Source of the DNA: Guillardia theta CCMP2712
Taxonomy: Eukaryota > Protista > Cryptophyta
Direction of reading: 5' to 3'
Assembly: GCF_000315625.1 (NCBI RefSeq)
Contig: NW_005434647.1
Location: forward strand, 176,103-240,102
DNA: 64,000 bases
This document shows, one piece after another, positions 8,506 through 59,786 of the stretch. Each line of letters starts with the position of its first letter. The stretch's first letter is position 1. The translations under genes and the position numbers were made by a program. Under the pieces are notes generated by a model, which saw only the letters and a program-made list of their open reading frames with translations, searched no databases and was not told the origin of the DNA.

Positions 8506-10023
8506 CTATATTTTGTTGTCCGACGCCGCCGTAGCCACGGCTGGCTTTGCCATAAGCAACACTGCGCACCAAACCGCCACAGCCCAGCACAAGGCTGCAA
8601 ACACTGTGATGGCGATCTTGAAACACGGAGACGTCAGGCGGGGTCATCGCGCGGAAACACGAGAGGCTACCTGGGTCTGCAGGTGGATATTCTCCTTCAA
8701 CATGTCATAGCCTTGCTCGTAGCCCAGCATGTCGCTGTCGTATCGGAGCTTCCACTGCAGCACATGTCACGCGTCCGATCCCTTGCACGCTTCTCCTATC
8801 CACGACCTTCCCGTTGACACAAACGCGCGGCTTGCCCGACCCAGAGTAGGTGTCGCCGTGGAGACAACTGGGAGTGAATCAAGGTCATGCGGCTGTCTGA
8901 GGCCACAAGCTTCCCACACTCACTCGTAGCACTTGTTGTTCACACAGTGACCTTGCCAGTCGATCACGCTCGTGTAGAAGCTGAACCTGGAGGCATCACA
9001 GCTTCAATGGCCGACCAACGGCTCCAGGCAGGTCGTCACCCGCCGCCACTGAGTGTACCCGACTCCATGCACTTCTGCTGTATAGTCAAGTCCTTGCTGA
9101 CGGACTCCTGCGGAAAGCCGACAGGTCCAACAGTCAGAAAGCAGAGCACGCGGCGGGTCAGTCAGAGGCTACCGGGAGGCAGATGGACGCGGCCTGGTAG
9201 AATTGGGGGATCGCCGTCTTCTCCTTGCTGCAAGTCCCGGTACTGGGCGTTGGGGTTACAGGAGAGGACAGGCTTGCTCGCAGCTGCTAGATGGCCCACT
9301 CACCCGTCATTGATGCAACTGATTTCCTGGCTCGTCTGAAAGGCGTTGGGGATAAACTTCCCACAGAAGCGATTCTTGTTTCTCTCATGGATCATCCTGG
9401 TTTCGTAGTAGCCGGTTGGGTAGTAGTAACCATTCCAGTAGTAACCACTATAGACGTAGTAACTGTTGTTGTAAATCTTGTTCCTGGAAGCATCAAAACG
9501 AAGTCAGCCTAGCGGTATCAAAAGCCAAGACAAGTGTATACTCGTAGACATTCGAGACAAGGTCTTGGCTGATCTCGTCAATCGTATTGCACAAGTCATC
9601 ATGTCCGTCCGGCAGCTCTCTCTTCTTGCAGATGCTTCTGATTTTCAAGTCCTTGTAGACGCCATAGTACTGCTTCACTTTCGCTTGATCAGCCGCGATG
9701 TACTTGCCCAAGTTTTCGAAAGCGCCTGAAATCTGGGACAGGGAAAGGTCTTGCGCACAATACTGATCCAGATCGCAGTCGAAGTCAGTTGTGCATTGCA
9801 CACACACACCGACAAAGGTGTAGGGCTCTTTGGTGTCTGCAGATTGAGTCAACCCCGTGTCGTTCCAGAGGGGCAGACAAATGGGGTAACTCTTGTCACT
9901 GCAATCAGCCTGCACATGGCACTGGGAGTACGAGGGAGCTGACGCGCTGGCAGGGGCTGCAGGGGCGGCGAGGAGAAGGAGAAGGAGGAGGGAGGGGGAA
10001 GTCGACAGGAGCTTGCTGTTCAT
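8506..10023 (-). CDS. Cys-rich type I membrane/surface protein, copy A (multi-exon)
   Basis: Signal peptide MNSKLLSTSPSLLLLLLLAAPAAPASA; CxxxxDC/CxxC repeats; a Tyr-rich exon; C-terminal TM IAITVFAALCWAVAVWCAVLLM followed by AKPAVATAASDNKI*. Confidence 0.75.
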
Positions 10024-12183
10024 GTTGTATGCGCTGCGCTCGCTTGCGTTAGCTAGGAGTCACTGACAGCTTGAAATAGCGTCACGTTACGCCTCCTGGC
10101 TCTGACCCACAAGAGTCATGACAAAGTTCACCATCCACCCACCCCATGAAGTTGCCTCCAGGATGCCAGAGTAGGACCGGGTCCTAGAACCCTTGACCGC
10201 CCGTATGCCTTGNNNNNNNNNNNNNNNNNNNNNNNNNNNNNNNNNNNNNNNNNNNNNNNNNNNNNNNNNNNNNNNNNNNNNNNNNNNNNNNNNNNNNNNN
10301 NNNNNNNNNNNNGGTACAATGCATACGGGCGGTTCTAGGACCCGGTCCTATCCTGGAGGTAACTTCAGCCTCCTTCAGGCAGGCGCAATGACGCTACGCC
10401 TCCTGGCTCTGACCCCTCCTGCTGGGCTGGCACATGACGACAAGTGTCATCACTAAAGTTCACCATCCACCGACCGGGTCCTAGAATACAATGCATACGG
10501 GCGGTTCTAGGACCCGGTCCTATTCCTGAATCCTGGCAGGCAGGCGCAAGGCATACGGGCGGTCAAGGGTTCTAGGACCCGGTCCTACTCTGGCATCCTG
10601 GAGGCAACTTCATGGGGTGGGTGGATGGTGAACTTTGTCATGACTCTTGTGGGTCAGAGCCAGGAGGCGTAACGTGACGCTATTTCAAGCTGTCAGTGAC
10701 TCCTAGCTAACGCAAGCGAGCGCAGCGCATACAACATGAACAGCAAGCTCCTGTCGACTTCCCCCTCCCTCCTCCTTCTCCTTCTCCTCGCCGCCCCTGC
10801 AGCCCCTGCCAGCGCGTCAGCTCCCTCGTACTCCCAGTGCCATGTGCAGGCTGATTGCAGTGACAAGAGTTACCCCATTTGTCTGCCCCTCTGGAGCGAC
10901 ACGGGGTTGACTCAATCTGCAGACACCAAAGAGCCCTACACCTTTGTCGGTGTGTGTGTGCAATGCACAACTGACTTCGACTGCGATCTGGATCAGTATT
11001 GTGCGCAAGACCTTTCCCTGTCCCAGATTTCAGGCGCTTTCGAAAACTTGGGCAAGTACATCGCGGCTGATCAAGCGAAAGTGAAGCAGTACTATGGCGT
11101 CTACAAGGACTTGAAAATCAGAAGCATCTGCAAGAAGAGAGAGCTGCCGGACGGACATGATGACTTGTGCAATACGATTGACGAGATCCGCCAAGGCCTG
11201 GTCTCGAATGTCTACGAGTATACACTTGTCTTGGCTTTTGATACCGCTAGGCTGACTTCGTTTTGATGCTTCCAGGAACAAGATTTACAACAACAGTTAC
11301 TACGTCTATAGTGGTTACTACTACAGGTTGATCCATGAGAGAAACAAGAATCGCTTCTGTGGGAAGTTTATCCCCAACGCCTTTCAGACGAGCCAGGAAA
11401 TCAGTTGCATCAATGACGGGTGAGTGGGCCATCTAGCAGCTGCGAGCAAGCCTGTCCTCTCCTGTAACCCCAACGCCCAGTACCGGGACTTGCAGCAAGG
11501 AGAAGACGGCGATCCCCCAATTCTACCAGGCCGCGTCCATCTGCCTCCCGGTAGCCTCTGACTGACCCGCCGCGTGCTCTGCTTTCTGACTGTTGGACCT
11601 GTCGGCTTTCCGCAGGAGTCCGTCAGCAAGGACTTGACTATACAGCAGAAGTGCATGGAGTCGGGTACACTCAGTGGCGGCGGGTGACGACCTGCCTGGA
11701 GCCGTTGGTCGGCCATTGAAGCTGTGATGCCTCCAGGTTCAGCTTCTACACGAGCGTGATCGACTGGCAAGGTCACTGTGTGAACAACAAGTGCTACGAG
11801 TGAGTGTGGGAAGCTTGTGGCCTCAGACAGCCGCATGACCTTGATTCACTCCCAGTTGTCTCCACGGCGACACCTACTCTGGGTCGGGCAAGCCGCGCGT
11901 TTGTGTCAACGGGAAGGTCGTGGATAGGAGAAGCGTGCAAGGGATCGGACGCGTGACATGTGCTGCAGTGGAAGCTCCGATACGACAGCGACATGCTGGG
12001 CTACGAGCAAGGCTATGACATGTTGAAGGAGAATATCCACCTGCAGACCCAGGTAGCCTCTCGTGTTTCCGCGCGATGACCCCGCCTGACGTCTCCGTGT
12101 TTCAAGATCGCCATCACAGTGTTTGCAGCCTTGTGCTGGGCTGTGGCGGTTTGGTGCGCAGTGTTGCTTATGACAAAGCCAGC
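8540..12183. repeat. Large inverted repeat: arms 8540-10212 and 10547-12183
   Basis: Mirror ORFs in the track are identical or nearly so. Coordinate sums are constant (20759 inside, 20723 beyond a 36-nt indel). Confidence 0.95.
10213..10312. other. Assembly gap (100 N)
   Basis: Run of n. Confidence 1.
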
Positions 12184-29533: not shown

Positions 29534-29564
29534 CTAAACCCTAAACCCTAAACCCCTAACCCCC
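29534..29564 (+). repeat. Interstitial telomere-like repeat (CCCTAAA)n
   Basis: ctaaaccctaaaccctaaacccctaacccc. Confidence 0.7.
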
Positions 29565-30938
29565 GAACTACCGGGACGAGAAGTGGGAAATTTCAGGCAG
29601 GCATGAGGAGCATCACTTGTACTCAGCTCATATTCGGAGAGGCTTCAAGCCGGCGGCCGACGACGAAGATGCGAGAAGCAGAGGGCTGGGAAAAGAGGGG
29701 AGGGAGGAACAGGAGGGCTGGGAAAAGAGGGGAGGGAGGAGCAGGAGGGCTGGGAGAAGAGGGGAGGGAGGAGCAGGAGGGAGCAGGAGGAGCAGGACAA
29801 CGCAGTCCCTATCATCCCCTCAAAGTGCAAGCTCCAAGTAGACTGAAAATGCTTACCGCCTTCCGAGGAAGAACATGGGGTCAAAGATACACATCCTGTA
29901 CCAGGATCGATCTCGATCTAGAGCATAACGAGTCACAAGGACAGGGATGTGCGATCAAACATTCCTCAAACAACCAGAATCAGCCTGAAAGATTGCGCAA
30001 ACACAGATCAAGATCGTACACATGCTGATTAGGATCACGTTGTTGAGGGAATAAATCGTCACTCAACACGTCGCCTACTCCCAGCTCATTCATACGCATT
30101 TTTGAGATGCATGTGAGGAATTGCGTTTGAACCTTTTATGACGTGACGAGACGTTGTAGTGCTTTTTCACACGCTGCTGAATTTGTAGGGTAAGCAGTGT
30201 CAACCCTGATGTAGCGCTGTGCAACATCAAGTGGCGCTACCGTTTACATGTTTCTAAGATATCATGTTTACTTATGTCCTGATTCTTGTTCCCTTGCTTG
30301 TCGTGAGGAGGATTTGTTGATTTATCCTATCCTACGCAGCTTGCTCCTGTTTGTCCCTTCCCCTCCAGTAAACCGAAGAAGATCATTCTCTATCTTATGC
30401 TCTCCTCGCCCCCTCCACACGTGTAGACATGGTGAGCGTTGATCTCATGAGCATCTGCACAAAGCCTCCATGACGATGCGGAGTCACGGATACTTGTACG
30501 GATACTTCCCTTCAACAGGACGCTTCATCAGCGCGGCTCCTCCTCTTGCCTTCCCCAACCTTAAGTAAACCAACAGACTTCTATCTTCTGCTTCTATATC
30601 TGCTTTCGTCCTGACTCTACTTTCTATTTGTTTTTTTTAGCTCCGTTGATCTCTACGTTGTGTATACTGACAACACCTCTCCTACTGCACCCATCTGGTT
30701 GGGCTAGTCACAAGTTCTGTAAATGAAGGCTTCACTTCTTGTGACGTCCGATCAGCGGCTGACACTTCTCCCCGATAGCCTCCATTGTGCATCAAGGTCG
30801 GTAGATCAGACGCGTTGAGTGACGGTTTATTCCTAACGTGCCCCTACTCATCTTACTTGAAGGCCTTCAGCATCCCTGCCTCGGGCCCCGCTGAGGCTCC
30901 ACAGCCGTCACGACGACCATCACCTCGTGGCTGAACAC

Positions 30939-46450: not shown

Positions 46451-46859
46451 AGTCGGCTACCTTTTGGGTGCAAGTGGCTGCCGATAGCGAATCTGTATTT
46501 TGGGATTTCTTCCGAAGAGCTCACAAGGTATCAATTGTCATCTGTCTTTCACTTCTGCAAGCCCAAAGTGGGAGGACCGGTTGCTGCTCGCCAACGTCCG
46601 TACACGCCACTTCCCGCAATGCCGCGATTTTCAAAACAGCCAACACATGTTTACTCAAAGTTAAGTTAAAACATGTTTACTACTTTGGTTTTTACTTGAA
46701 ACATACTGTGACACATCTGAGGCGGGCCGTCAGATCCGATGAGAGCCCGGCCCGCCGCGCGGCGCCGAACTTCGAAGCCCGCGGCCGGGACCGTCCGGCC
46801 CGGCCCGGATGGCGACTGTGGAAGGTGAGCCTCTGACCGGCGCGGCCCGCTATGACTTT

Positions 46860-47013
46860 TTACTCAAAGTTAAGTTAAAAATCAGTACGAGGACAATCAG
46901 GATAGTCGAGGAGGCTTGACCCTGATCGGACACTGTCGCACCGTGACTGGCCAAACGGCGAGAAGAGAAAGACAGCGAGAACCAAACCCAATCCTGCCGA
47001 CTGCTGTCCCCCA
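46860..47013 (+). repeat. Dispersed repeat, copy A (TTACTCAAAGTTAAGTTAAAAATCAGTACGAGGACA...GAGAAGAGAAAGACAGCGAGAACCAA...)
   Basis: Homologous to 57950-58114. Head fragments also occur at 46651-46671, 57008-57043 (-), 12484-12511 (-, degenerate) and 8188-8201. Confidence 0.85.
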
Positions 47014-47228
47014 AACTTATATGACGGTCAGTCCGGCGTCACGGTCCGATCATCAGATGGACCGTCCGGAAGCCCGGCTCACTGCCGTCACCCGGCGGCC
47101 GGGGCCCGGGGATCGGACGCGGTGAAGGCTAGGGGCCTAGGCTCCGCCGGCACTGAGTGACGCAAGGAGGCTGACCGTACTACCTTACTCGGCGCGGCAG
47201 TTGCCAGACCCGCCGCCTGAGTTGCGGC

Positions 47229-49120
47229 TCAGCCGTGCGTTCCCGAGGCTGGGAACCAAATGGAAGAGGCAGTTCCTCCGAGAATCCTGCCAGTTCAAGA
47301 GTCACTCAGACCGTTTTCCAAGAATCCGATTGCATCCAATCTCAGGCGGCATCACTAAAGTTATGTGAACACTACAAGCAGTGATTCATGGAGACGAGAA
47401 CAAGGAACAAGTTGGGGTCAGGGCGGATTGCACTGAGTAGCGCAAGTGACGGGAGGTGGAGGTGGAAATGTTGCAAATGTGTGTGCACTGAATGTGGGGT
47501 AGATCGGATGTGTGTGTGTGTGTGTGTGCGGGGGGGGGGGGGGGGGGGGGGGCAAGGGGACAAGATCTGACCATGCAAGCTCGTCCTCCGTAAGGAACTT
47601 ATACTCCTCCTTGGCCAACTTCACCTGCGCAGACATGCTGTGAGCAGACGGTTGAAGATCAACACTGTAGGAATTCTACCGTCATATCATAAGACGTGTT
47701 TCCTCCTGGCCAGGTAGGCATCTTGCAAACTGGCCAGTCGGATGCAAACATGCAGCGATCGGGCCCAAATCTCCGCACGACCTCATCCCCTTGTCAACAC
47801 CACACAGCAGGCAACGTCGGCTGGGTTGCCAACCTTCTGCACCACACTGATGGCGTCTGACCATGGATACTGCCCCGTGCTGATGGCCCAGACATGGGAG
47901 ATCTGATAGGACAGAAGGGCTCATGGGCCGAGCGACGAAGCAGCGCAGCTTGCAAGCACCTTGACCAAGACGTTGGGAGAGGATGCAAGGGACAGAAGCT
48001 CGTCGATCTGTGTACGTGTGTTATGAGGAGGAGGATGCCGTCGCCTCTAGGCTATCCTACCTGCTGATCGTCAGATGGTGGAACGTCGGCCATGTGGTCC
48101 ACTATGAACTTGACGTTGGGAAACTGCTGGGAGCTCAGGCATACGTCGTCCTCCTTCCTCCGCACCCACCTCCTTTATCCTTGGAGCGACCCATTGCAGA
48201 GACTTTCCGCCGTCCTTGCCAAGAAAGAGGAGAACTGGAAACTTGAGCTCCTCTGCCTTCTTCAAGATGTTTCGCATGCGCTCGGACTCCCACCATCCTC
48301 GATCCAGCGGGCCGAAACGAACCTGAGATAACAGCATGAGAACGGAAGAGAAAGAAGTGGGTCTGTTCAGAAAGGGGAGGAGTGCAAGCTTGAGCCTTAG
48401 AGACATTGAGGCTATGAGGATGGTTCAGAACGTTGTTGTGTTGTAGACAAGCGGAGAAAGCAACCAGGGACGAGAGAAGCAAGGTAGAGAGTGAGGCGGG
48501 AAGAGGTGTTGAGATACGGCATGAGATCAGAGCAGGGTAGAGCAGTGAAGAATGCAGCATACTCCGATGAAACCCTCCTTCGAAAGCTCCTCCAACTTCT
48601 CCACTGAAGCATCGTCCTCCGGATTCACCCGCGCCACCGCCGCGAAGCGGCCAGGAAAGCGCCGCATGCAGTCTCGCACATAGGAGTTGTCCCAGAGGTA
48701 GCAGATGGGCTGCACAAGAACGGTCTTGTCCACCCCGTTGGCGTCCATGAGAGCGATGAGCTCCTCTGCAGAAGCATCAGCGGCTGGAGGGTTGGGGGTG
48801 GCCCAGGGGTAGTTGCGGTCCTGCTTCCAGACATGCACGGCGCTATCGACGATGCTCATCCTGAGAGCCTGTGAGGAAGGAGCTCTGCCCTCTGACCCGC
48901 CTCCTCTCTGCCTCAACGCGAGGTAGGAGAGGCACAGGGCTGCCGCGGCACTACCGACAGAAGAGGAAAGGAATTTTCTGCGGTGGTCGAGTCCTCGCGG
49001 GGAGGACTGCCATGTACAGGTGGACGGGCCTTGGCTCGAAGGGAGGGAAGGAGGAAGCTCCCAGGCTGAGCACAGCGAAACTCCCAGTACGACCCACGCA
49101 TGGAGTCGCAGCAGGACCAT
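47229..49120 (-). CDS. Amidohydrolase_2-family (lactonase-like TIM barrel) protein with N-terminal targeting extension; multi-exon
   Basis: IVDSAVHVW, GVDKTVLVQP...WDNSY, VRFGP, FIVDHMA, YPWSD, FGPDRCMFASDWP, last exon WILGGTASSIWFP. Confidence 0.85.
47507..47552. repeat. (GT)n followed by a long G homopolymer (intronic)
   Basis: Direct reading. Confidence 0.9.
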
Positions 49121-49449
49121 GGAGGGGAAGTGGAGGCGATGGGGAAGGGGGGTAGAGGGTGGGTCCTTATAAGTCCCTTCGTTTAGAGGAGGGAGCACGG
49201 GACTATTCGGGGAGGATGTGTTTAAGTTTCAAGGTAATGGGGAGAGGAGGAGAACAGCGTGGAGCTGACATGGAGAGAAGGAGAGGTAGCAGGGAATGAA
49301 CACGCTTTATTTACAATGTTTACAGTAAAATCAAAGAACAAGAGCGGCAGAGAGAAAAGAAGAGAGGAGGAAGGAACAGGGACTGGATGACAGAAGCAGG
49401 AGGAAAGAAAGACGCCACCATTTCCACCGGGTTGTAGGGTAGGATGAGA

Positions 49450-51037
49450 TTACAACGCGAACTTCTTCTTGCTCCCCAAGTTTTCTTTCTTGTGGATCCA
49501 TTCGTATTCGCCGCGACTAGTGGAAGAGCGTCAGCTAGAAGAAGAAAAGAAGAAAAAGAAGAAAAGAAAAAGCAGCACGGAACAAAGGGCATGTACGAGG
49601 AAAGGACAGCAGGAACGAAGGCAAAGAAGGTTCCAGAAGAAACGAGACATAGGGGCTGTGGACTGGCCGGAGCTAGGAGAGAGTAGGGAGGAAGAGGAGT
49701 ACTTCAATATATGGACTGGTGACTCACCTGCTATCGAATGTCCCCGCCTGCATGCTCTTCAGCTTCAGAGTGAACTTAGGGCCAATCTCCTGCTCCACCT
49801 CGTCAGACATCTAAGGAAAGAGAGCAGAGCCCGCACCTGCAGACGAGCCTTCTCCCCTTGCTTGTCGTCGGGGAAGATGTACCTGCCATGGCTGATAAGA
49901 CTCTCGCTCTGCGCACCTCCAGGGAACAAGGACTACAAGGAAGCTGCACAAGGAACGTCCTCAGATACCGTCGTAGTAAAAGATGTCTAGCATGGGAGGC
50001 TAGAAACCATAATCTCCTCACAGGACAGAGCACGATGGGGAGAGAAGACCGTGACGAGAGCAAGGGCCGGGATATACCTGTGATGTCGCACGAAGACGTA
50101 GTCTCTTTGACAGTGAAATGTGACAACCCGTCTTCCCGTGAACTGAGGATCCTGTCAGGGAACATGGAAGTCAGTCTCAAGCCTATCCATGCTAATGAAC
50201 TCCGACGGTATCCCAGGAAAGGTTCCTCAGATACCGTCGTAGTTAAGAGTATCTGATATGCGATCAGCCCCTCGGTGTCATCAGAGGAAGTGATAGTCGG
50301 TTGCAGCACAACACAAGAGAGAGGAATAGCTGCACCTGTGGAAACAAGCTTGAGAATGCACGGCTAACTCGTTGACCCAGCCTCGTTGTGAAGTTGTTCA
50401 GAATGAGCTCAGGCTTGTGTTTGGTTGCCCTGGCATGGTTCTTGATCTGATCCGGAAGCTTCACGCTTGAGAGGCGGAAATGCAGAGTGGGGCCTTCCGG
50501 CAGGTGGATGAGCAGCATTGAGCATGGGAGCTTCTTGTGCCCACCGAGCTGTAAACCCTGACCGAGGATAATCAAGTTGGTGAACCCTCTCTCCCCCGCC
50601 CACTTGCAGATGTCCTTGATGTTGTAGTTGCGTCGGGAATAGTAGTACGATCCAGGGATCAGCACAAGAAGGGACTTGACCAGTTCGATCAGAGGCTTCG
50701 AAGGATGGTTGTTGGTCGTGATGATCGTTCTAGGAGGTTCGCCGTCGAAATATTTCCGGAACTCATCCTCCTCCTCATCACGTCGGATCTCCTCGTCTTC
50801 GGACTCCATGATGGTCTCGTCGGCCTCGCGCATGTTCTCCAAGGTCCTGGGGACTTGCTTGGGGAGGTCCTTCTTCTCCGGGTCCTCGGCATCTTTCTTC
50901 CTCTGCTCCTTCTTGGCTTTCTTGATCGCTTTCTTTTGTTTCTTGATCCTGTCATAAACCTCTTGTCTTTTTGCCTTGTTCCCAATGTGCTTGGTAGCTG
51001 CCCTGTCCTCTTCGGAAGGGAGCTTCTTCTTCACCAT
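49450..51037 (-). CDS. RPF1: Ribosome production factor 1 (Brix domain), 5 coding exons
   Basis: [48 protein letters not shown] / [25 protein letters not shown] / YIF...ARLQ / [10 protein letters not shown]...GTFDS / [10 protein letters not shown]...KKKFAL*. Confidence 0.93.
49957..50026 (-). ncRNA. Box C/D snoRNA (snR79-like, 18S Cm1007-equivalent guide), copy 2, in an RPF1 intron
   Basis: gtcct-g-TGAGGA (box C variant)...actacgacggtat-CTGA (box D)-ggac, with a terminal stem; guide antisense to 18S AUACCGUCGUAGU. Confidence 0.75.
50223..50289 (-). ncRNA. Box C/D snoRNA (snR79-like, 18S Cm1007-equivalent guide), copy 1, in an RPF1 intron
   Basis: ttcctc-TGATGA (box C)...CTGA (D')...aactacgacggtat-CTGA (box D)-ggaa, with a terminal stem; same guide as copy 2. 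Confidence 0.85.
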
Positions 51038-52781
51038 CCTGCAAACACAATGTTCTCAGTTGCCGCAGATTGCACTGTCGCGAAGTAGAATGAGCGCATA
51101 GTGCTCAAGAGCAGCAAAGAGCGATTGCAAAGCAACAGGCTGCAGCTTTGCTCTATCACATGGAGAATCGAGGGATGTTGAGCTAACCAGCTGATTCCAG
51201 GCATGGTCTCCACATCAATCAGCAACCATCTGCTGTTGAAACTAGCATGAGCTCTTGCCTTCTTGCCGCTCTCCTCTACAACTCCTACACTCATGCCCTC
51301 CTTGCATCTGCTCTTTCCTGCTCTCTCCTGCTCTCCTGTTCTCTAACCTTCTCTGCTCTTCTTTGCCTTGCCCTCCCCTCGTCTCTGCACAGTTTCCCCC
51401 TTGCTTGGTTTGGCGCGCGCACGTGCACGTTTGAAGTCAAGGTTCAGTGTTCAAGGACCCGAGCTACACCGGGCCCCGGGCCCCGGGCCCACCGTACGAT
51501 CGGGCAGAGTAGTAAAAAGATCGTTCGAGCATCTTGAACCGTTGTGAAAACGGATGTAATGGCGATCAGTGGTACTAAATTTACACCTCATGCCCATGTC
51601 AAGAGATACCATTTTCATTTTTAAGTTCTATATTCATCTCAAAACAATTATAAATTTCTGATCGTTGTGTTTTTGATGGTAATGGGACCATAAAGAGATC
51701 GAATCGACTTAATAGCTAGTCCTTCTATTAAAACACTTTTATTTCAAATCACACGGAATGTCACAGAACTTCACAGATTCTTTTTCAGATTTCCTGTACA
51801 TCAAAAGCAATTCAAAATACATATCACAGAGATTGACACACAATTGCGTAGTGGTATCACACGGTTATTCCTAGTACCCCAGGAAGGACACGACGGAAGA
51901 GCTCAGGGTTTTCTGCAGTTCCAAGGTTAAATCATATTTTGAGTTAAGCTTTATTTTTTGGTCTGATTTTCATCTACTATATTTGAGTAACTAATTATTA
52001 TGTATTGTGTCTTGTGGTATCACACCGGGGCTGATCAAATTTTCCTGAACTAGTCTCACCCTTTTGTGCAATTGATAGAAACATCTGCTGCCGCCTGCCA
52101 TGCTGGCTGTTGCCGCCCCACAGGAGGGGATGAGCCTTCCTATCGTTCAAGAGCGATGTCGCTTGTCCCTCCTACTCCAGTACATACACGACCTCCATGA
52201 GATTTCTCCTTCTCTTTCCATGCACTTGATGTCCTATCACAGCTTCTGCTCCCGCACCCTCCAAGACCACTCCCGGCCTCCTCCGGCCCCCGTTTCTGAT
52301 AGGAGTGGCTGCATGCCGCTGGCGCGATGCGTAGCGCTGACTTTGCTACCTGATATCAATATTGTTGTCTTGGGACTTTGTTTGATGTTGATTCTTCTCT
52401 TCGTACTCATCGATGTCGTGCCTGTCTGGTTTGCAGATCTCAATACTTTGGGGCACGAACACAATGAGTAGCTGAACCCTTTTGAAAGATGTTCTAGGAG
52501 CAGACAAGGCCTTTAGCATGGCAAATTCAAAGTTAGAGATTGAGTATCCCCAACATTTTTAGCAAGAAGCCTTGTGCAGTCATTGCATCAGTTTCAAAAG
52601 TGTCGAACATGTGGGTGAAGCTAGACTAGGTAGAGAAAGTGGCGTGAGGAAATGTTCGACCATGGTGCGTCTTTTTGAAGCGTTTACTCCACGAGTCTTG
52701 ACATCAAACACGTTCCATGAGGTTTTGTGTGTGTGGTCGCCTGACTCCTGCCTTCACAGAGGTGAGCGCCTATCTACCGCC

Positions 52782-55614
52782 ATGAACGAAAAGTTCAAGG
52801 TGGAAGGTGCCCACCTGAAGCCTGGCTTGACGGAGAGCTCAAGAGCGCTAGCTAAGACAAGCAGAGGACAAGAACATGCAAGATTGACAGCCGATCTGCA
52901 CTCAGGACATGTGGGAGGCAGGAAGTCAACGCAGAGCAGCCTCCTGCGCTCCAACGCGGAGCAGTTTGCGGATCTCATCCCCGAAGGAAGCGAGGACTCG
53001 GAGGTGGATCTGAACGAGGATCTGAACGAGCTTGATAGCATCGAGGCTGAAATCTTTGGGGGGACGCCGCAGGAGGCGAAGGGGGTGCACAGGGGAGGAA
53101 GGGAGGACGACGGAGGAGGCTCGCTGCTGATGAAGGTCGAGCACAGGAGGGGGCCTCCGATCCTCTCGCCGTATCTGCAGCACCACAGGGTGGTGCCGTC
53201 GAGCAGGAGGGCAGATTTTGAGAGCAAGTGGATGCCCAAAGAGGTTAACGGCTCGGTGATGACGAGGCTGAAGAAGGAGCTGGGAAGCAAGGCCGTCCCT
53301 CGAACCATGTCCTTCCTCAAGTCGCTCATGAGGTCGCTGAGCCGCCTCCTCCCGACGGAGGGGAGGATGGCTCTCATCGAGGCACTGCAGAGCTACGAGG
53401 CTGGGAAGCTGTCAGAGGTGACCCTTGCGGAGAGGATAAAGGGGCTGGTGGACCAGTACAGGATAGTGGTGCCACTTGAGGATGGGCACGGTTACCTGCC
53501 ATGGAGGAGGTCGAGCAACGATCCCCCTCCCCTGTCGTTTGATGAAGCTTCTCCTGCCAACGACGGGATGGCTGAAGTTTCTTTCACTAAGAAGGGGAAG
53601 CGGAAGCTTGACGATCGTGACGAGTTGGCTGACATGCAGGATCCTGCAAGGCGAGCAGGGTTGAAACAGCAGGAGGACGAGGAAGGAGAGGATGGCTGCA
53701 TGGAAGAAGGAGGGTCTTCAAGCAGAGGGGCAATGCAGGGGGAGACGTCTAGTGAGCAACTCGAGGACACGCCGATGGCGCAGCATATTACGGGGAAAGT
53801 AAGGAGCGTGTACAAGAGCAGCATGCCTGTGAGGGTACGGGTGGTCGGGGAGAAGGTCTCAACGGCAGGAGGGTACCTGCATCGCTCTAAGGCGATCATG
53901 GCGTTCCAGGAAGCGAGAGGGGGGAAAGAGATCCTGCTGTTTGCCATGTACACCAACGAGTTCGGAGCAGACGCGCAGGCCCCCAACACCGGGAGGGTCT
54001 ACATCGAATGCATAGACGGGCTGCCGCTGAGGCCGAACGAGAGGGGGGAGGAGAGGGAGGAGCTGGTGCGGGGGATCATGTACGGCTACCTGGAGTACAT
54101 GAAGCTTTGCGGCTTCTCCTTCATCCACCTGCGGGTCCCTCCTCCCCACGACTCCAACTGCCAGATCTTCTCGAGGAGGCCGGCGGACGTGCGGCTCCAG
54201 TGGTCCATCAGGATGTCCCTGTGGCTCAAGAAGCTCCTGCGAAGCGCCGCGGCCGCCAAGATCATCGACGCTTACCAGTGTGGAGCCCATGGCAGCATCC
54301 TCAACTACCCCCCGACGCTCCTCCCCGCCCGTCACCTCTACCTGGAGTGCACCTTTGCCAAAGTGGAAGCAGCAAGTGCCAACCGTATCTCCTTCGCATC
54401 CCAGCAGCAGGTACTGGACACTCCTTCCAATCCCCTCCCTGCTCGCCTACCCCCTCGTATGCTTCTCTCGTTGTCTGCGCCGTGTACCCCTGCCCTCTGT
54501 TGCTTGCTATGGTATATCGTTTAACGCGTTGGCAGCTGCGAGAAAGACTGTTTGTGGTTCGTCTGCACCCGGGTCCCAGGACAGGAGGAGGAACAGGCGT
54601 GCGCGCCATCGATCGCTCTCCCCTCGTCCCAGCGACCACCGCAGCCTCTCGGCAGGACCTCATGTGAGTCGAGGGGTAGCGCATCCTCAGGCCGCTGACG
54701 AGGAGAACGAGCAGCAAGACGTTGACGACGCGGCGCTGGTCGTTTCACACTCTTGCTCATGCTACGACGACGACAACGGGACTGTGAGCTGGCACAGGAG
54801 CATGGGCGGCGTCTGATGGTTGCGAGCAGGTTGCAGATGCTGATCAGTGAGCAGCGAGCGGCGAGAAAGCAGGTGGGTGGGAAGAGGAAGCTGTTGTAAG
54901 ATGATGACGCACCTGCAGGAGGCGACAGAGGCGTCATCCTCCTCCTATCCTGCTGCAGACACCTCGATGGCTGCTGCTTCGAGCTCTTCCTCCAAGGATG
55001 CATTTAGGACTCCTGAGCGTCTATCCCAGCAGCTAGCAGCCATGCTCGAGCGATCCGCCGAGACCACACCGGTTGTTGAGCATGCAGCGGTTCCTCTCAG
55101 TGACGGGGAGAGCGCAGAGTGGATCAGTGCCAACGCCAGGACAAGAACTTGCTGAGAACCGATCGGAGTTCCTGGTTAGGGAGGCAGCCTGTGCATATCC
55201 TGCTCTCCTTACTCCCCTTTCAGGATTCCGTATTTGAGGTCTGGGAGAAGCCAAGGGAAGAAAAGCTGGTAAGCCAACGCATCTGCCTCCTCCTGTTCCT
55301 CTTCTGTTCCCCTCCAAATCTGCTCTATAGCCCCTTGCTTTCCTTCCTTTCCTCTCCTTGTGTCCCGCCAGCCGCCATCTGACTTCCGGGCAGTCTGCCA
55401 TCACTGCCAGCACCGTCTCGCCGCTCATCCAGCCTTCTCCGAACCTCCGGCACATGCAGGTGAGGACCTGCTGCAGGAGGGGACCTCACCGCTGACTCGC
55501 TTCAGCATGAGATGCAGGAGCTGGGGCAGCAAGAGATTGACGATGGCTCTTCCCTGTTCTGCATGGACACCCTTCAGTTGTGATCGGGACGTCAGGGGCC
55601 TTGGGAGTAGCTAG
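52782..55614 (+). CDS. Divergent p300/CBP-type (KAT11) acetyltransferase-domain protein with an RST-like helical domain; probably catalytically impaired; multi-exon
   Basis: KAIMAFQE...LLFAMYTNEFGADAQAPNTGRVYIECIDG...YGYLEYMKLCGF...HLRVPPP...IFSRRP...WLKKLL, then LFVVRL and RWSFHTLAHA segments colinear with the p300 HAT. Start and last exons are approximate. Confidence 0.8.
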
Positions 55615-56008
55615 GAAGGTCTCCTTCCCGTACAGCTGGGATGTTCTTGGGGCTGCGTTCTGCTCAGAACCCTTCCTCCTGCACACTTGCGACTCTCACT
55701 TGCTTCTTGGAACCTCTCTTGTTTCTTTGCCATGCGCCCTGTGCTAACTTTGACTTGTCTGTAAGATATGAATGCAATGAATGTAAGATTGAATGAATGC
55801 TCCGTTTAACTCAACCCACGTTTGCAGAGTATGTCACATACCTCGCTGACTTCACAATCATAAGAACCAGCGGGAATCGTTACAATTTCATGTACCCTTC
55901 TTGTATCGGTTTTGACTAGGATGTCGTTTTTGACCGTTTATTCATTTCCTACCCTTCCTACCCATTTTCATCCTTCTATACAACCTGAAGCTCCCTCACG
56001 AGCTCGTT

Positions 56009-56458
56009 TCACCTGCAGTCTGCCTTGCAACCACAACCCAAGAAGTTCCCGTCTTGATTTATGGATGGGCCTAGCGATTTCTCTGACATCTTCAGCACTT
56101 TCATCGCTCCATCTTCAAGGACATTTCCGTTATGATCAATGCATGGCCTCCTGGTTATTTCCAGGTTGATGATACTAAAGGCGACACAGCCTGAAGCGCT
56201 GCCGCTGACTTGTCGATCATTGAAATCGTCCTGGACTTGACTGTAGATGGTGTTGCGTCGCACGCAGAAGCTGGCAGCGTGTGCTCGTGCACATGCAGTT
56301 GAGACCACCAGACTTGCTCGCCTTCGACCAGCGGAACATGCTGAGGGGCTTTGCATCACCAGGGCCCCATGCGAATCTCCAAAACTCGAGCAATGCAAAT
56401 GAGGTCTGAGATGAGACGAAAGGAGGAGAGTTGAGCTCTGCGAAGATTGTTCGATCAT
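56009..56458 (-). CDS. Small intronless hypothetical protein
   Basis: ATG (56458) to stop within the 205-aa open frame; no recognisable domain. Confidence 0.35.
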   Translation of the reverse strand: MIEQSSQSSTLLLSSHLRPHLHCSSFGDSHGALVMQSPSACSAGRRRASLVVSTACARAHAASFCVRRNTIYSQVQDDFNDRQVSGSASGCVAFSIINLEITRRPCIDHNGNVLEDGAMKVLKMSEKSLGPSINQDGNFLGCGCKADCR

Positions 56459-57007
56459 GTCGCAGAAATATCTGAGGAAAGTGCGAGAAATGTGCACTAA
56501 CGAGCCACAAAACAATGTGCGAAGCAACAAGAGCTGAGAATGAACCAGACACAGCGAGGAATTCAAGGTAGGAGGCGGAGAGAAGAGAGGAAGCAAGGCT
56601 GGGGGATGGAGGCGAGGAGGTTGCAAGGAGAGGAATCAATCTTGATCTATCTGCAGGAGGAGACGCTTAAGACGAGATTTCTTTACGGGCTTAAGAGGAG
56701 TGACAGGAGGAAAGGCAAGGCAAGGCATCGCTTCGAAGCTGCAAGGTCGCATCCCCTGCACCACCCTACCCCCAACTTTCCTCCATTTTTCGGGTACTTG
56801 ACGGAGACCGGAGCGTTAAACCGCCGTGACCCCCGTCAGCCGTCACGTTACCGGACCCTCCGGGATGGCTCTTAACGACTCCCAACTGGTGAGCGTATCT
56901 GAAACGAGGGGGTCAAATGCCCTTCTGAGTAGGGGTGGGGTCGAGCATTTATCTGCTTCCACGATAAGACCTGGTTATTCGCGTTTAAACTTGAAGTACC
57001 GTACAAG

Positions 57008-58500
57008 TTGTCACGTACTGATTTTTAACTTAACTTTGAGTAACTAAACTGTCCGCCGCTGCCACGGTCAGCCTGTCGTCGTGACAGATTCTACCATCGC
57101 GCGGCGGCGCAGCGATCGGACGGCGGTCACTGGGCGGCCACGGGTGCGCGGCGAGCTTCGGAACGCGAGTCAACTTACGGTTCGGTCCGATTACTGAGTG
57201 ACGGAGTGACGGTGCCTGCCGGCCGCTGAGCCTGACTTTGAAGTCAGTCAGGCTCAGCTTTACTAAACGGTTTACAACTTACTAACTTAAGTTACCGTTA
57301 AGTTAGCCTTGACTCAGTGAAGCCGGGCCGTCCGATCGGAACTTTGCCCGTCCGGTCGGCCCCGGTGTGCCCGGCCGATCATGCCAGTGCCTACCAAGCA
57401 CGGGGCCGCCGCGCGGGCGTGACGGCGGCGGTCCGTCCCGGTCTGCGGCGGGGGCGGCGTGACTGAGCCCGAGGTGACTCGGGCCCGACTGGCAACCGTT
57501 GGCCCTAGTAGTGCCACCGACTCAAACCGTTCAACGGTTCAACGGGTGACCGAACTCCCGGTCCGTCACCCGGCGGCGGTGCCGTCCGACTCAGTCGTCA
57601 TCAGTCCGATCCGATGCCGCGGCCCTGGCCCCGGGCCGGGCACTGATCATTGGACACTTGAGTTATTACGGTTAGCCTGTCCGATCACGATACCGTGAAT
57701 CAAGCCTATGCCATCATCATGGCCGGGCTTCAGTGATACAGTGATCATGCGGACCGTCAATTGAACTTGGCAGTTACCCGGTAATACCGTGCCGCATGCC
57801 GTCCGTGACGGTCAGCCACGTACCCGGTGACCGGTGGCCCTCCGACGGTTCAACGGTTGGCCCGGACTCCGGGAACGGCCCGGCCGCGGCCGGGGCGGCC
57901 GGGCCGGGTTCAATGGTTCGAGCCAGTGACTTTCCCTCAGCCTGTCAAGTTACCAAAGTTAAGTTCAACGGTTAAAAATCAGTACGAGGACACTGATTGA
58001 ATCAGGAGAGTATCGGACTCAGCAGGCTTGGCACAGGCCATACGACGAGAAGAGAAAAGACAGCGAGAACCAACCCTTATCCGGGCCTGCCGCAGTGCCG
58101 ACTGTGCTGTCCCCTTCAGTAAGTTTCCGACAGTGACTCAGTGACTGTCACAACTGACCGTACCGTCGGACGGTTGGCAGCGCAGTCCGAGGCGCTGAGG
58201 CCGCGAATTCAGTGCCGCAGGTTCTGAAGCCGCCTGAGGCCGCTGAGAACGAGCCACGGGGGCGGTCTGACTCAGTCGTCACGCCACGCGACTGAGCCTC
58301 CGTCACGGACTCGGAGTCCGACCCGGTACAGTTCTGAGAGGCTGAGGCTGGCAGTGAAGGCCGGTGCCGGAGGGGCCCTGGCAGAACCCGGGCCGGCGGT
58401 CAGCGTCACGGGCGAGTCGCAGCCGCGCCATCACCATGCGGTACTAGAGGGCCCTTACAGGCTGAGCCACGTACGGTACGGTAGTGGCCGCGGTGACTCC
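57008..58500. repeat. GC-rich palindromic-word island containing inverted heads of the dispersed repeat (57008-57043 on -, copy B 57950-58114 on +)
   Basis: TGACTCAGT, AACCGTTCAACGGTT, CCGATCGG and CGGCCG words; cgtactgatttttaacttaactttgagtaa is the reverse complement of the repeat head. Confidence 0.7.
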
Positions 58501-59786
58501 GACCTGATCAAGTTGATGATTGAGATGATGGATATGAGCCAACCATTTCGAGCTAAGTCCGGGCAGCATCCCGGCATACCATACAAGCTTCTCTATTGCT
58601 CCACTAGGAGGTGAAGTAAAACAACCCTCACATCGAAGGTGCAAACAACCATTATATCGAAGGTGCGATGACACAAGAACCGTTGTGTGGAACATGTTAC
58701 GCGGATGAAGGAGTCTGGTATTCGTGTGTGCACGTATAGGCAAAGTATCCGTCACTGCAATACAGACCTGACAACTAGCAGATAGAAGACTTCATGGGGA
58801 ATTGCACCTTCGTACTGCCACAAGCCATAAAACGAGTTGGATGATTGATCGTAGCTGCGTTGAACAACATGATTCGCTTGACTGGGCTCGATCCTGAACG
58901 TTCAAGTAGAGGCACACCATTGATCGTTTTCATCGTGTCTAGCCTGGTTTGCTTGTCCCGCCCATGGGTTTTCTCCCCATCTTTTCCAGCACTGATGACC
59001 CCTGGTGAGATAACGCGCTGCATGTTCTCTTGCGGCTACGCCGAGAAACTCCGGGCTGTATTTGTTAGCACGCATACCTTCCAGAGTCTTCCACTAGCTA
59101 TAGGCTCTCATGTTCTCCGCTGCCATCATGGCGGTCGTCGTTCGCTCTCCTTGTCACTCCTCTGGTGACTAGAAGGGCAAACCGGAGCAAACAAAGGAGG
59201 GGGAGGATAGAGCCTACAAACCCGCCTCAATAAAATACTAGGAAACGAAGGAGGCAGCGAAAACCGGCACTCCAACCACGTAAGCGACGGCATGCACGAC
59301 AAGCAGGGGAACAAGGATCAGGACAAAGAGCAGTAGCGCAAGGCCCCTGCGAGGAGGACGGATAGTGAAACACGCGCAAGGGGCGGATCTCCTGAGTTAA
59401 CTAAAGATATCAGTCACCCCGTGCACGATAGGTGGCCGGGTGCCGCCTGTTTTACTGCGGAGCCCCCGGGTCTGAGCGGGAAGGAGGGGTATCTGTATGA
59501 AATGCACACCACACAAACTTGACGGGGGGGCATGCAGAGCGAGAGGAGGGGAGGGAGAGGTATGGAGATAGTCAGAGAGCACACCACACAAACTTAGGGA
59601 GAGGGAGGATGAGAGGATAGGTAGATAGAGTATGAGGTAGATGGACGGCCTGCTAGACACCCTGGAAGGTGATTGGAGGCGATGGCGCCGAAAGCAAGGA
59701 ACGAGGGTTGCGAGAGTGCAAGAGTACAAGAGAGAAGGACAACCAGAGATAAACAGTCAGAGAGGGAGAGATTGGATTCATCTCGA

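Follow-up and report, generated by a model that had tools for sequence, protein, structure and literature searches.

Flank-templated micro-insertions in a dispersed repeat and C/G-centred palindromes in the intergenic GC islands of Guillardia theta

How do GC-rich intergenic islands come by the short words that recur in them? The question is raised by a 64-kb stretch of nuclear DNA of the cryptophyte Guillardia theta CCMP2712 (JH992991.1:176103-240102; hereafter the window, to which all positions refer), which holds two copies, here called A and B, of a short dispersed repeat, both of them inside intergenic GC islands as judged from the annotated neighbours. A preliminary description of this DNA had noticed that the copies differ by extra segments like the words that fill the islands, and had proposed that islands grow by accretion of such segments, either through a local insertion process or through selection for protein-binding sites. 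We find that the history of this repeat includes insertions copied in reverse from their own flank around a single C or G, and that products of this type are specific to the islands. The enzyme behind the insertions, and accretion as the builder of the islands, are what we infer from these two observations.

Flank-templated insertions in two copies of one repeat

Copies A and B align as conserved blocks between indels; their mean column identity is 78%, and blastn within the window pairs them at E = 1e-13. Two of these blocks, AAAAATCAGTACGAGGACA and AAGACAGCGAGAACCAA, occur exactly twice each in the window, for which shuffles expect 0.00 and 0.17 occurrences, and the core CAAAGTTAAGTT occurs four times (0.07 expected). 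A and B are diverged copies of one dispersed repeat, confirming the preliminary description on this point, and the extra segments that it listed are all present: CAACGGTT, CTGATTGA, GACTC, GGGCC (or CGGGC) and CAGTGCCG in B, and a 26-nt stretch in A. The copies, their indels and the surrounding islands are listed in Table 1.

Two of the three 8-nt insertions in B, CAACGGTT and CAGTGCCG, are exactly the products that X-C-rc(X)-G-X gives from the 3 nt left of the insertion point, where rc denotes the reverse complement. Taking as P the summed chance that a random 8-mer of island composition yields any such product at that point, we obtained 4.4e-5 for CAACGGTT and 2.0e-3 for CAGTGCCG, or ~1e-7 jointly. 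The third 8-nt insertion of B forms an odd palindrome with 6-nt arms and a G centre (CTGATT-G-AATCAG). Both 5-nt insertions read X-rc(X)-G-X (GA-TC-G-GA in A, CC-GG-G-CC in B), and the insertion CGTGACT of A begins CAC-C-GTG. Every readable case has a C after the left flank or a G before the right flank. The complete form is thus X -> X-C-rc(X)-G-X with an X of 3 nt, while incomplete events take the shape rc(Y)-G-Y or Y-C-rc(Y).

Two features of transposon excision footprints of the hairpin type are found at these sites. Palindromic nucleotides are templated by the flank (AAC, GCA, CTGATT, TC, GG and GTG), and a short direct duplication is kept around the two complete events (GTT...GTT and TGC...TGC). 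Reading the 8-nt insertions as 8-bp duplications of the hAT type was rejected by inspection, as the predicted sequence mismatched. A flank-templated, copy-in-reverse insertion with a C/G pivot has occurred in the history of this repeat.

It might be argued that these are random, ordinary indels and that the grammar over-fits a handful of them. There are only ~6-8 events, the one-sided partial readings have free parameters (resection and tract length), and a loose junction-palindrome statistic left most events short of significance; it picked up palindromes of the flanks, and the exact-product test was used in its place. Set against this are the joint chance of ~1e-7 for two exact 8-nt products and the island statistics given below, which are very strong and independent of the A/B events. 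We regard chance indels as a very improbable explanation.

Table 1. Repeat copies, their indels and the adjoining GC islands in the window (a slash marks an insertion point)
Feature	Position	Strand	Description
Copy A	46859-47020	+	30-nt head motif, variable middle, conserved central block, tail ...CTGTCCCCCAAACTT
Copy B	57950-58114	+	More micro-insertions than A, plus one 14-nt deletion
Copy C	57014-57046	-	Head motif alone; 30 nt, 100% identity to A; divergent from B across ~900 nt of island
Copy D	46650-46671	+	Head-motif fragment, 22 nt at 100% identity; direct repeat CATGTTTACT on its flanks
GC islands beside copy A	46701-46850 and 47001-47250		GC 0.68-0.73; ~70% of bases in C/G-centred odd palindromes
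Composite GC island around copies C and B	57051-58500		Intergenic, divergent promoter-type region
B insertion i, CAACGGTT	57966-57973	+	AAGTT/AAAA -> GTT-C-AAC-G-GTT
B insertion ii, CTGATTGA	57993-58000	+	Inverted copy of adjacent AATCAG; makes 13-nt odd palindrome CTGATT-G-AATCAG
B segment ATCGGACTCAGC	58012-58023	+	A has CGAGG there; includes GACTC; holds TC-G-GA, GA-C-TC and CT-C-AG; polarity either way
B-specific 14-nt deletion site	58030-58031	+	ACCCTGACACTGTC kept in A and family consensus; loose ends before 58031 in X1, X2, X6 and X21
B insertion iv, GGGCC (CC-GG-G-CC)	58083-58087	+	A and RNA-contig consensus: ...CCCAATCCTGCC
B insertion v, CAGTGCCG	58093-58100	+	TGC/CGACTG -> TGC-C-GCA-G-TGC
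A insertion viii, TCGGA (GA-TC-G-GA)	46926-46930	+	Against family consensus CCTGACACTGTC; 13 contigs in X1, also X6
A insertion ix, CGTGACT (GCAC-C-GTG...)	46942-46948	+	B and majority: GCACAGGCC

Polarity of the differences between the copies

The polarity of the indels was set with copies C and D, the contig consensus, loose ends of alignments and joint contigs. CAACGGTT is found neither in A, C or D nor in the majority of ~1000 copies, and where other copies are aligned with B the alignment breaks at 57971; it is rare in the family or unique to B. The pre-insertion state GGACA/ATCAGG is present in A, in a 9-contig consensus and in two joint contigs, so that CTGATTGA is an insertion. Likewise, GGGCC is an insertion in B, since the RNA contigs carry the shorter form given in Table 1. 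At 58041 and 58045 nearly all genomic copies side with A.

The 26-nt stretch of A (TGATCGG...GTGACT) has more than one origin. In the consensus of 13 other copies, GCAC is preceded by ...GGCTTGACCCTGACACTGTC, which means that B lost 14 nt and that the extra sequence of A is mostly ancestral; the gained parts are TCGGA and CGTGACT. The preliminary description had allowed that its extra segments might be ancestral and deleted in the other copy, and this is what happened for most of the 26 nt; it is not the case for the polarised insertions in either copy. Ordinary deletions and 1-2-nt slips also separate A and B. The two copies bear different events of the same kind.

The same structure in the GC islands

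We analyzed palindromes in 12 islands of the window (4366 nt), with dinucleotide shuffles and with island sequence simulated by Markov models of first to fourth order (M1-M4) as controls; S denotes C or G. Odd palindromes with 3-nt arms number 156 with a C centre and 140 with a G centre, against 40 and 39 expected from the shuffles. Those centred on A (15 against 16) or T (25 against 17) are near expectation, together 40 against 32 under M1, as are even palindromes with 3-nt arms (133 against 111 in shuffles and 108 under M1). The enrichment, 4-6-fold, is thus confined to C/G-centred odd palindromes. It persists when the arms are required to contain A or T (154 against 30 expected), a requirement under which even palindromes are depleted (27 against 42). 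The Markov simulations give 75 (M1), 139 (M2) and 133 (M3) for the 296 C/G-centred palindromes; much of the signal lies in pentamers of the form ab-S-b'a', with some beyond them. C/G-centred odd palindromes take up 69% of island bases, compared with 27% under M1, 42% under M2 and 16% in non-island DNA.

The product of a complete event corresponds to a triple X-S-rc(X)-S-X. With an A/T-containing X of 3 nt, the islands hold 27 such triples against 0.4 (M1), 0.8 (M2) and 4.8 (M4) expected. Triples with a 2-nt X are explained by the pentamers and those with a 4-nt X are rare, so that the excess, once pentamer content is controlled, is specific to a 3-nt X. The commonest type is C..G (13, against 6 for G..C; by eye, ~12 to 3 independent loci). 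Tandem Repeats Finder detected micro-arrays in the islands that repeat X-S-rc(X)-S units with a period of 8, for example AACGGTTC, GTTGAACG, GAAGTTCC and CAGTGACT. Triples with two C/G pivots number 45 in the 4.4 kb of island and 4 in 57 kb of non-island DNA (3.8 expected), and these 57 kb show no enrichment in any of the palindrome or triple measures. The product type of the insertion grammar is specific to the islands.

These results bear on the proposal that the island words are dimeric transcription-factor sites (of the TGACTCA and AACGG types, for example) kept by promoter selection, with no special mutation process involved. The islands are intergenic, one of them lies in a divergent promoter region, and bZIP- and Myb-like words are over-represented (GATCGGAC, 10 against 0.25 expected; TGACTCAG, 5 against 0.06). 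However, the arms of 298 island palindromes use nearly all trinucleotides and share only the geometry of the C/G pivot, which argues against a fixed motif set; the sites arise through flank-templated insertions of 5-8 nt and not through substitutions; the 69% coverage is far above binding-site density; and two contigs of related cryptophytes around the same gene are without such islands. We therefore consider binding-site selection distinctly unlikely, and this part of the preliminary description was not borne out.

The gene in question is RPF1, an exon of which lies in the window (95% identity to GUITHDRAFT_137695). Contigs of two other cryptophytes with the RPF1 orthologue (82% and 73% protein identity) carry ~8-9 C/G-centred palindromes per kb and no such islands, compared with ~68 per kb in the G. 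theta islands. This comparison of one locus gives a hint that the palindromic islands may be lineage-specific.

At 10179-10580, a small repeated block contains four copies of the 15-nt odd palindrome TAGGACC-C/G-GGTCCTA; it lies between the arms of an inverted gene duplication (8.5-12.2 kb), by an assembly gap (N run, 10213-10312). The arms of this duplication (860 nt at 100% and 776 nt at 99% identity) differ by one 36-nt indel in a GTAGTAGTAACC-type coding repeat (9399-9437 compared with 11322-11324). We considered this indel as an event of the insertion grammar and rejected it in favor of slippage in the coding repeat.

A proposed fold-back origin of the insertions and islands

Given the analyses presented above, the explanation that we favor, and that we hold to be probable though well short of secure, is that A and B are copies of a transposon-like repeat residing in islands, where a fold-back insertion process acting mainly in islands makes stereotyped micro-insertions. 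Such a process is the most likely source of the island vocabulary, of the GC richness and of the strand symmetry.

The mechanism would begin with DNA ends that carry one extra C at each 3' end. These would be sealed or bent back into hairpins, which would then open off-centre before rejoining. Such ends could come from a cut-and-paste element that makes a 3-bp target duplication and has ends 5'-C...G-3', if its terminal base stayed behind on each flank when the hairpin formed; the cut would have to fall one nucleotide inside the element to leave the C and G pivots. Off-centre opening would yield X-C-rc(X) at the left side and rc(X)-G-X at the right, and joining through the shared rc(X) would produce exactly X-C-rc(X)-G-X, with longer opening or resection giving the partial forms. 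Each event would add a C and a G and copy local sequence on both strands, and its repetition would raise GC content and keep strand symmetry, which fits the island composition (A 0.139, T 0.155, C 0.356, G 0.350). A one-base centre is not a feasible spontaneous hairpin loop, and an enzymatically closed hairpin is favored for this reason.

Hairpin formation on the flank during excision is established for hAT, Transib, Mutator-like (MULE) and RAG1 recombinases (PMC5499845), and CACTA elements make a 3-bp target duplication, have CACTA... ends of the form 5'-C...G-3' and leave footprints (10.1101/342816). The insertions described here resemble the footprints and P-nucleotides of hairpin-forming DDE recombinases (hAT, Transib/RAG1, Mutator-like, CACTA/En-Spm) in having reverse-complement copies of the flank beside a short target duplication. 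Enzymatic hairpins also permit palindromes with a centre of 0 or 1 nt. The 3-nt duplication and the C...G polarity would fit excision scars of a CACTA-like element. They differ from known transposon footprints in that the 64-kb window yielded no donor element and that G..C, C..C and G..G arrangements are also present; for scars so dense as to compose whole GC islands there is no prior description.

Several observations count against this explanation. The polarised events number only ~6, and CAGTGCCG, as well as a TG slip, is polarised by A alone. CTGATTGA is common to B and another single-copy locus (copy E; X1 record 3), which aligns to 57971-58065 without gap or mismatch over this insertion. 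In the islands, M4 already expects 240±17 of the 296 C/G-centred palindromes, pentamer frequencies holding most of the palindrome signal, and triples of the G..C, C..C and G..G types occur too. Removal of strict complete events accounts for 280 of 4366 island bases (~6%), and recursive de-accretion, applied to nesting, gave 34 first-round reductions and one second-round reduction, a ratio no better than in simulations. A search of the 64-kb window for terminal inverted repeats (TIRs) and target duplications returned noise only, and no element with a 3-bp duplication and C...G ends. Finally, words identical to inserted ones lie near four of the events: GTTCAACGGTT occurs 115 nt upstream of the insertion in B (57848), CAGTGCCG recurs 117 nt downstream (58210), GACTCAG is found 119 nt downstream (58135), and the reverse complement of TGATCGGAC lies 118 nt from the insertion in A (47044).

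The last of these points would be explained if microhomology-mediated repair, of the polymerase-theta type or by synthesis-dependent microhomology-mediated end joining (SD-MMEJ), copied nearby island words, as they stand or inverted, into breaks. Templated insertions by snap-back and loop-out are on record, and alternative end joining is known to make small insertions from sequence near the break, direct or inverted (PMC5728401, PMC2943611); in addition, direct 7-mer repeats in the islands cluster at distances below 40 nt. Word copying leaves unexplained the origin of the words, the single pivot, which is C or G and never A or T, and the fact that 3 nt at the insertion point fully fix the two complete events. 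Intramolecular snap-back requires primer repeats and a loop of several nucleotides, not one, while the insertions seen here have a single C/G centre, and the complete events can arise where no inverted repeat existed before. For CTGATTGA, the only template close by is its own flank. The words at 115-119 nt are common in the islands, and the distances between repeated words have no general peak at 110-120 nt, so a preferred donor distance of ~117 nt is unsupported. We consider this route unlikely as the general explanation; microhomology-mediated copying could contribute to the insertions.

The sharing of CTGATTGA with copy E indicates that this insertion was passed on as the repeat was copied and need not have arisen in the island of B. 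Together with the heterogeneity of the family, in which copies without the middle region exist, it lends some support to the idea that the A/B differences are inherited subfamily differences unrelated to the islands, their likeness to island words being coincidental or due to a genome-wide mutation bias. The grammar is not genome-wide, as the contrast between 57 kb of non-island and 4.4 kb of island DNA makes clear; CAACGGTT is rare or confined to B, and A and B carry different events of like kind. Subfamily inheritance alone is accordingly a quite improbable account.

Two ideas of the preliminary description survive in altered form. Island-type insertions can indeed be polarised, but they are not drawn from a lexicon: their source is the flanking 2-6 nt, copied in reverse complement about one C or G. 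Growth of the islands by a local insertion process is supported by their saturation with the same structure, from which non-island DNA is free; because strict events make up ~6% of island bases and nesting is not detectable, accretion is offered here as a conditional reading of the islands.

A further step, which we put forward tentatively and with less than even confidence, is that a locus-targeted fold-back process writes the intergenic islands, through repeated insertion and excision of a CACTA-like element at promoters or through a domesticated hairpin-forming nuclease. Each event would then duplicate 3 nt, add a C and a G and insert a reverse copy of the site, and the sequence of promoter islands would reflect mutation and not selection for a set of motifs.

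If fold-back insertion does operate in this way, the GC-rich intergenic islands of a model cryptophyte would be the fossil record of one stereotyped DNA-end reaction, and a new route would exist to promoter-proximal sequence, GC content and apparent motif vocabularies without binding-site selection. The case also advises caution in taking over-represented island words for regulatory motifs. The ~600-1000 copies of the repeat would then provide a natural reporter array in which each insertion can be polarised, in a culturable organism with a public genome. In full-text literature searches, neither this repeat nor nuclear palindromic islands were found described for Guillardia; the insertion grammar and its association with the islands are out of the ordinary and, as far as we could find, unpublished.

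Nature of the repeat family

Copy number was assessed by aligning one RNA run (19.8 million records) and three contig sets to 55800-59300 (3501 nt). Contig depth (X1) reaches ~68,700 at the motif of copy C and ~38,800 at the central block of B, compared with ~45-76 in single-copy flanks, and an older sequencing run agrees in ratio (3874 and 2852 against ~5-7 for flanks). From these ratios, the genome contains about 1000 copies of the 30-nt head and about 600 of the central block. Metagenome scans for further copies of the repeat returned none, or chance matches only.

Beyond its TTACTC end, the head is followed by flanks that are diverse among copies (agreement 0.4; loose ends behind 57043), and inward of this end the consensus goes on as AGGACAATCAGGAGAGTC (agreement 0.68). 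In some contigs a head on the plus strand is followed after 14-23 nt by a head on the minus strand, and by virtue of these inverted pairs the head behaves like a TIR. The family is heterogeneous, some copies being without the middle region (joints from 57992 to 58048 or 58050). No long open reading frame crosses the repeat unit, and stops near the head break all frames. The head is represented by ~6 reads in the RNA run, on both strands and reading through GTACG, a low level that fits background transcription of a transposon-like family.

The repeat is most likely a short, non-coding and ordinary transposon-like family of the G. theta nuclear genome. It resembles MITEs (miniature inverted-repeat transposons) and other TIR families in being a short, non-coding unit of high copy number, with inverted head pairs, an intergenic promoter-side position and weak transcription of both strands. 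Unlike such families, it has in the window no complete two-ended element: A and B have the head at one end only, and the head also stands alone (C and D) and in direct tandem. Among the flanks of these four copies there is no consistent target-site duplication.

Other assignments were rejected. A short interspersed element (SINE) is contradicted by the lack of tRNA-like sequence, of an Rfam family and of an A-rich tail, and a known RNA gene or tRNA-derived element by the lack of any Rfam or ARAGORN match anywhere in the window. The head ends CA/GTACG, which recalls a spliced-leader gene; this was rejected because the RNA reads are few, run through GTACG and come from both strands, and because there is no Rfam match.

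The setting of copy D (46640-46700) is a patchwork. A 16-nt fragment of the motif has CATGTTTACT on either side, and 26 nt after CAAAGT comes ACTTTG, its reverse complement; together these make a direct-plus-inverted duplication on a larger scale.

Setting of the islands and further observations

Copy A has the 3' end of an amidohydrolase gene on one side and a small gene on the other. The island that holds copies C and B is situated between a gene for a 149-aa protein (56009-56458, minus strand) and a cation-efflux gene (from ~59.7 kb, plus strand). The islands have a GC content of 0.68-0.75, compared with 0.54 for the window, and a CpG observed/expected ratio of ~1.0-1.1, compared with 0.78. 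In GC content, CpG ratio and intergenic position they are like promoter CpG or GC islands and hotspots of GC-biased gene conversion, although neither of these accounts for insertions templated by the flank or for the surplus of odd palindromes with a C/G centre.

An AT-richer patch in the B/C island (57232-57310) looks like scrambled pieces of the repeat head (TTACTAAAC-G-GTTTA, TAACTT/AAGTTA), and the island may hold remnants of additional repeat copies. Just 3' of the island that follows copy A, (TG)10 is succeeded by a run of 23 G (47509-47552). A second dispersed repeat of high copy number is located at 59171-59300, with a depth of ~21,000 against ~70, or ~300-350 copies. Its other copies are usually preceded by ...TTGACTGAAAA, and one X2 contig continues into GGTTTAGGGTTTAGGG telomere-type repeats. 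A short interstitial run of telomere-like CTAAACC/CCCTAACC units adjoins an island at 29534-29568.

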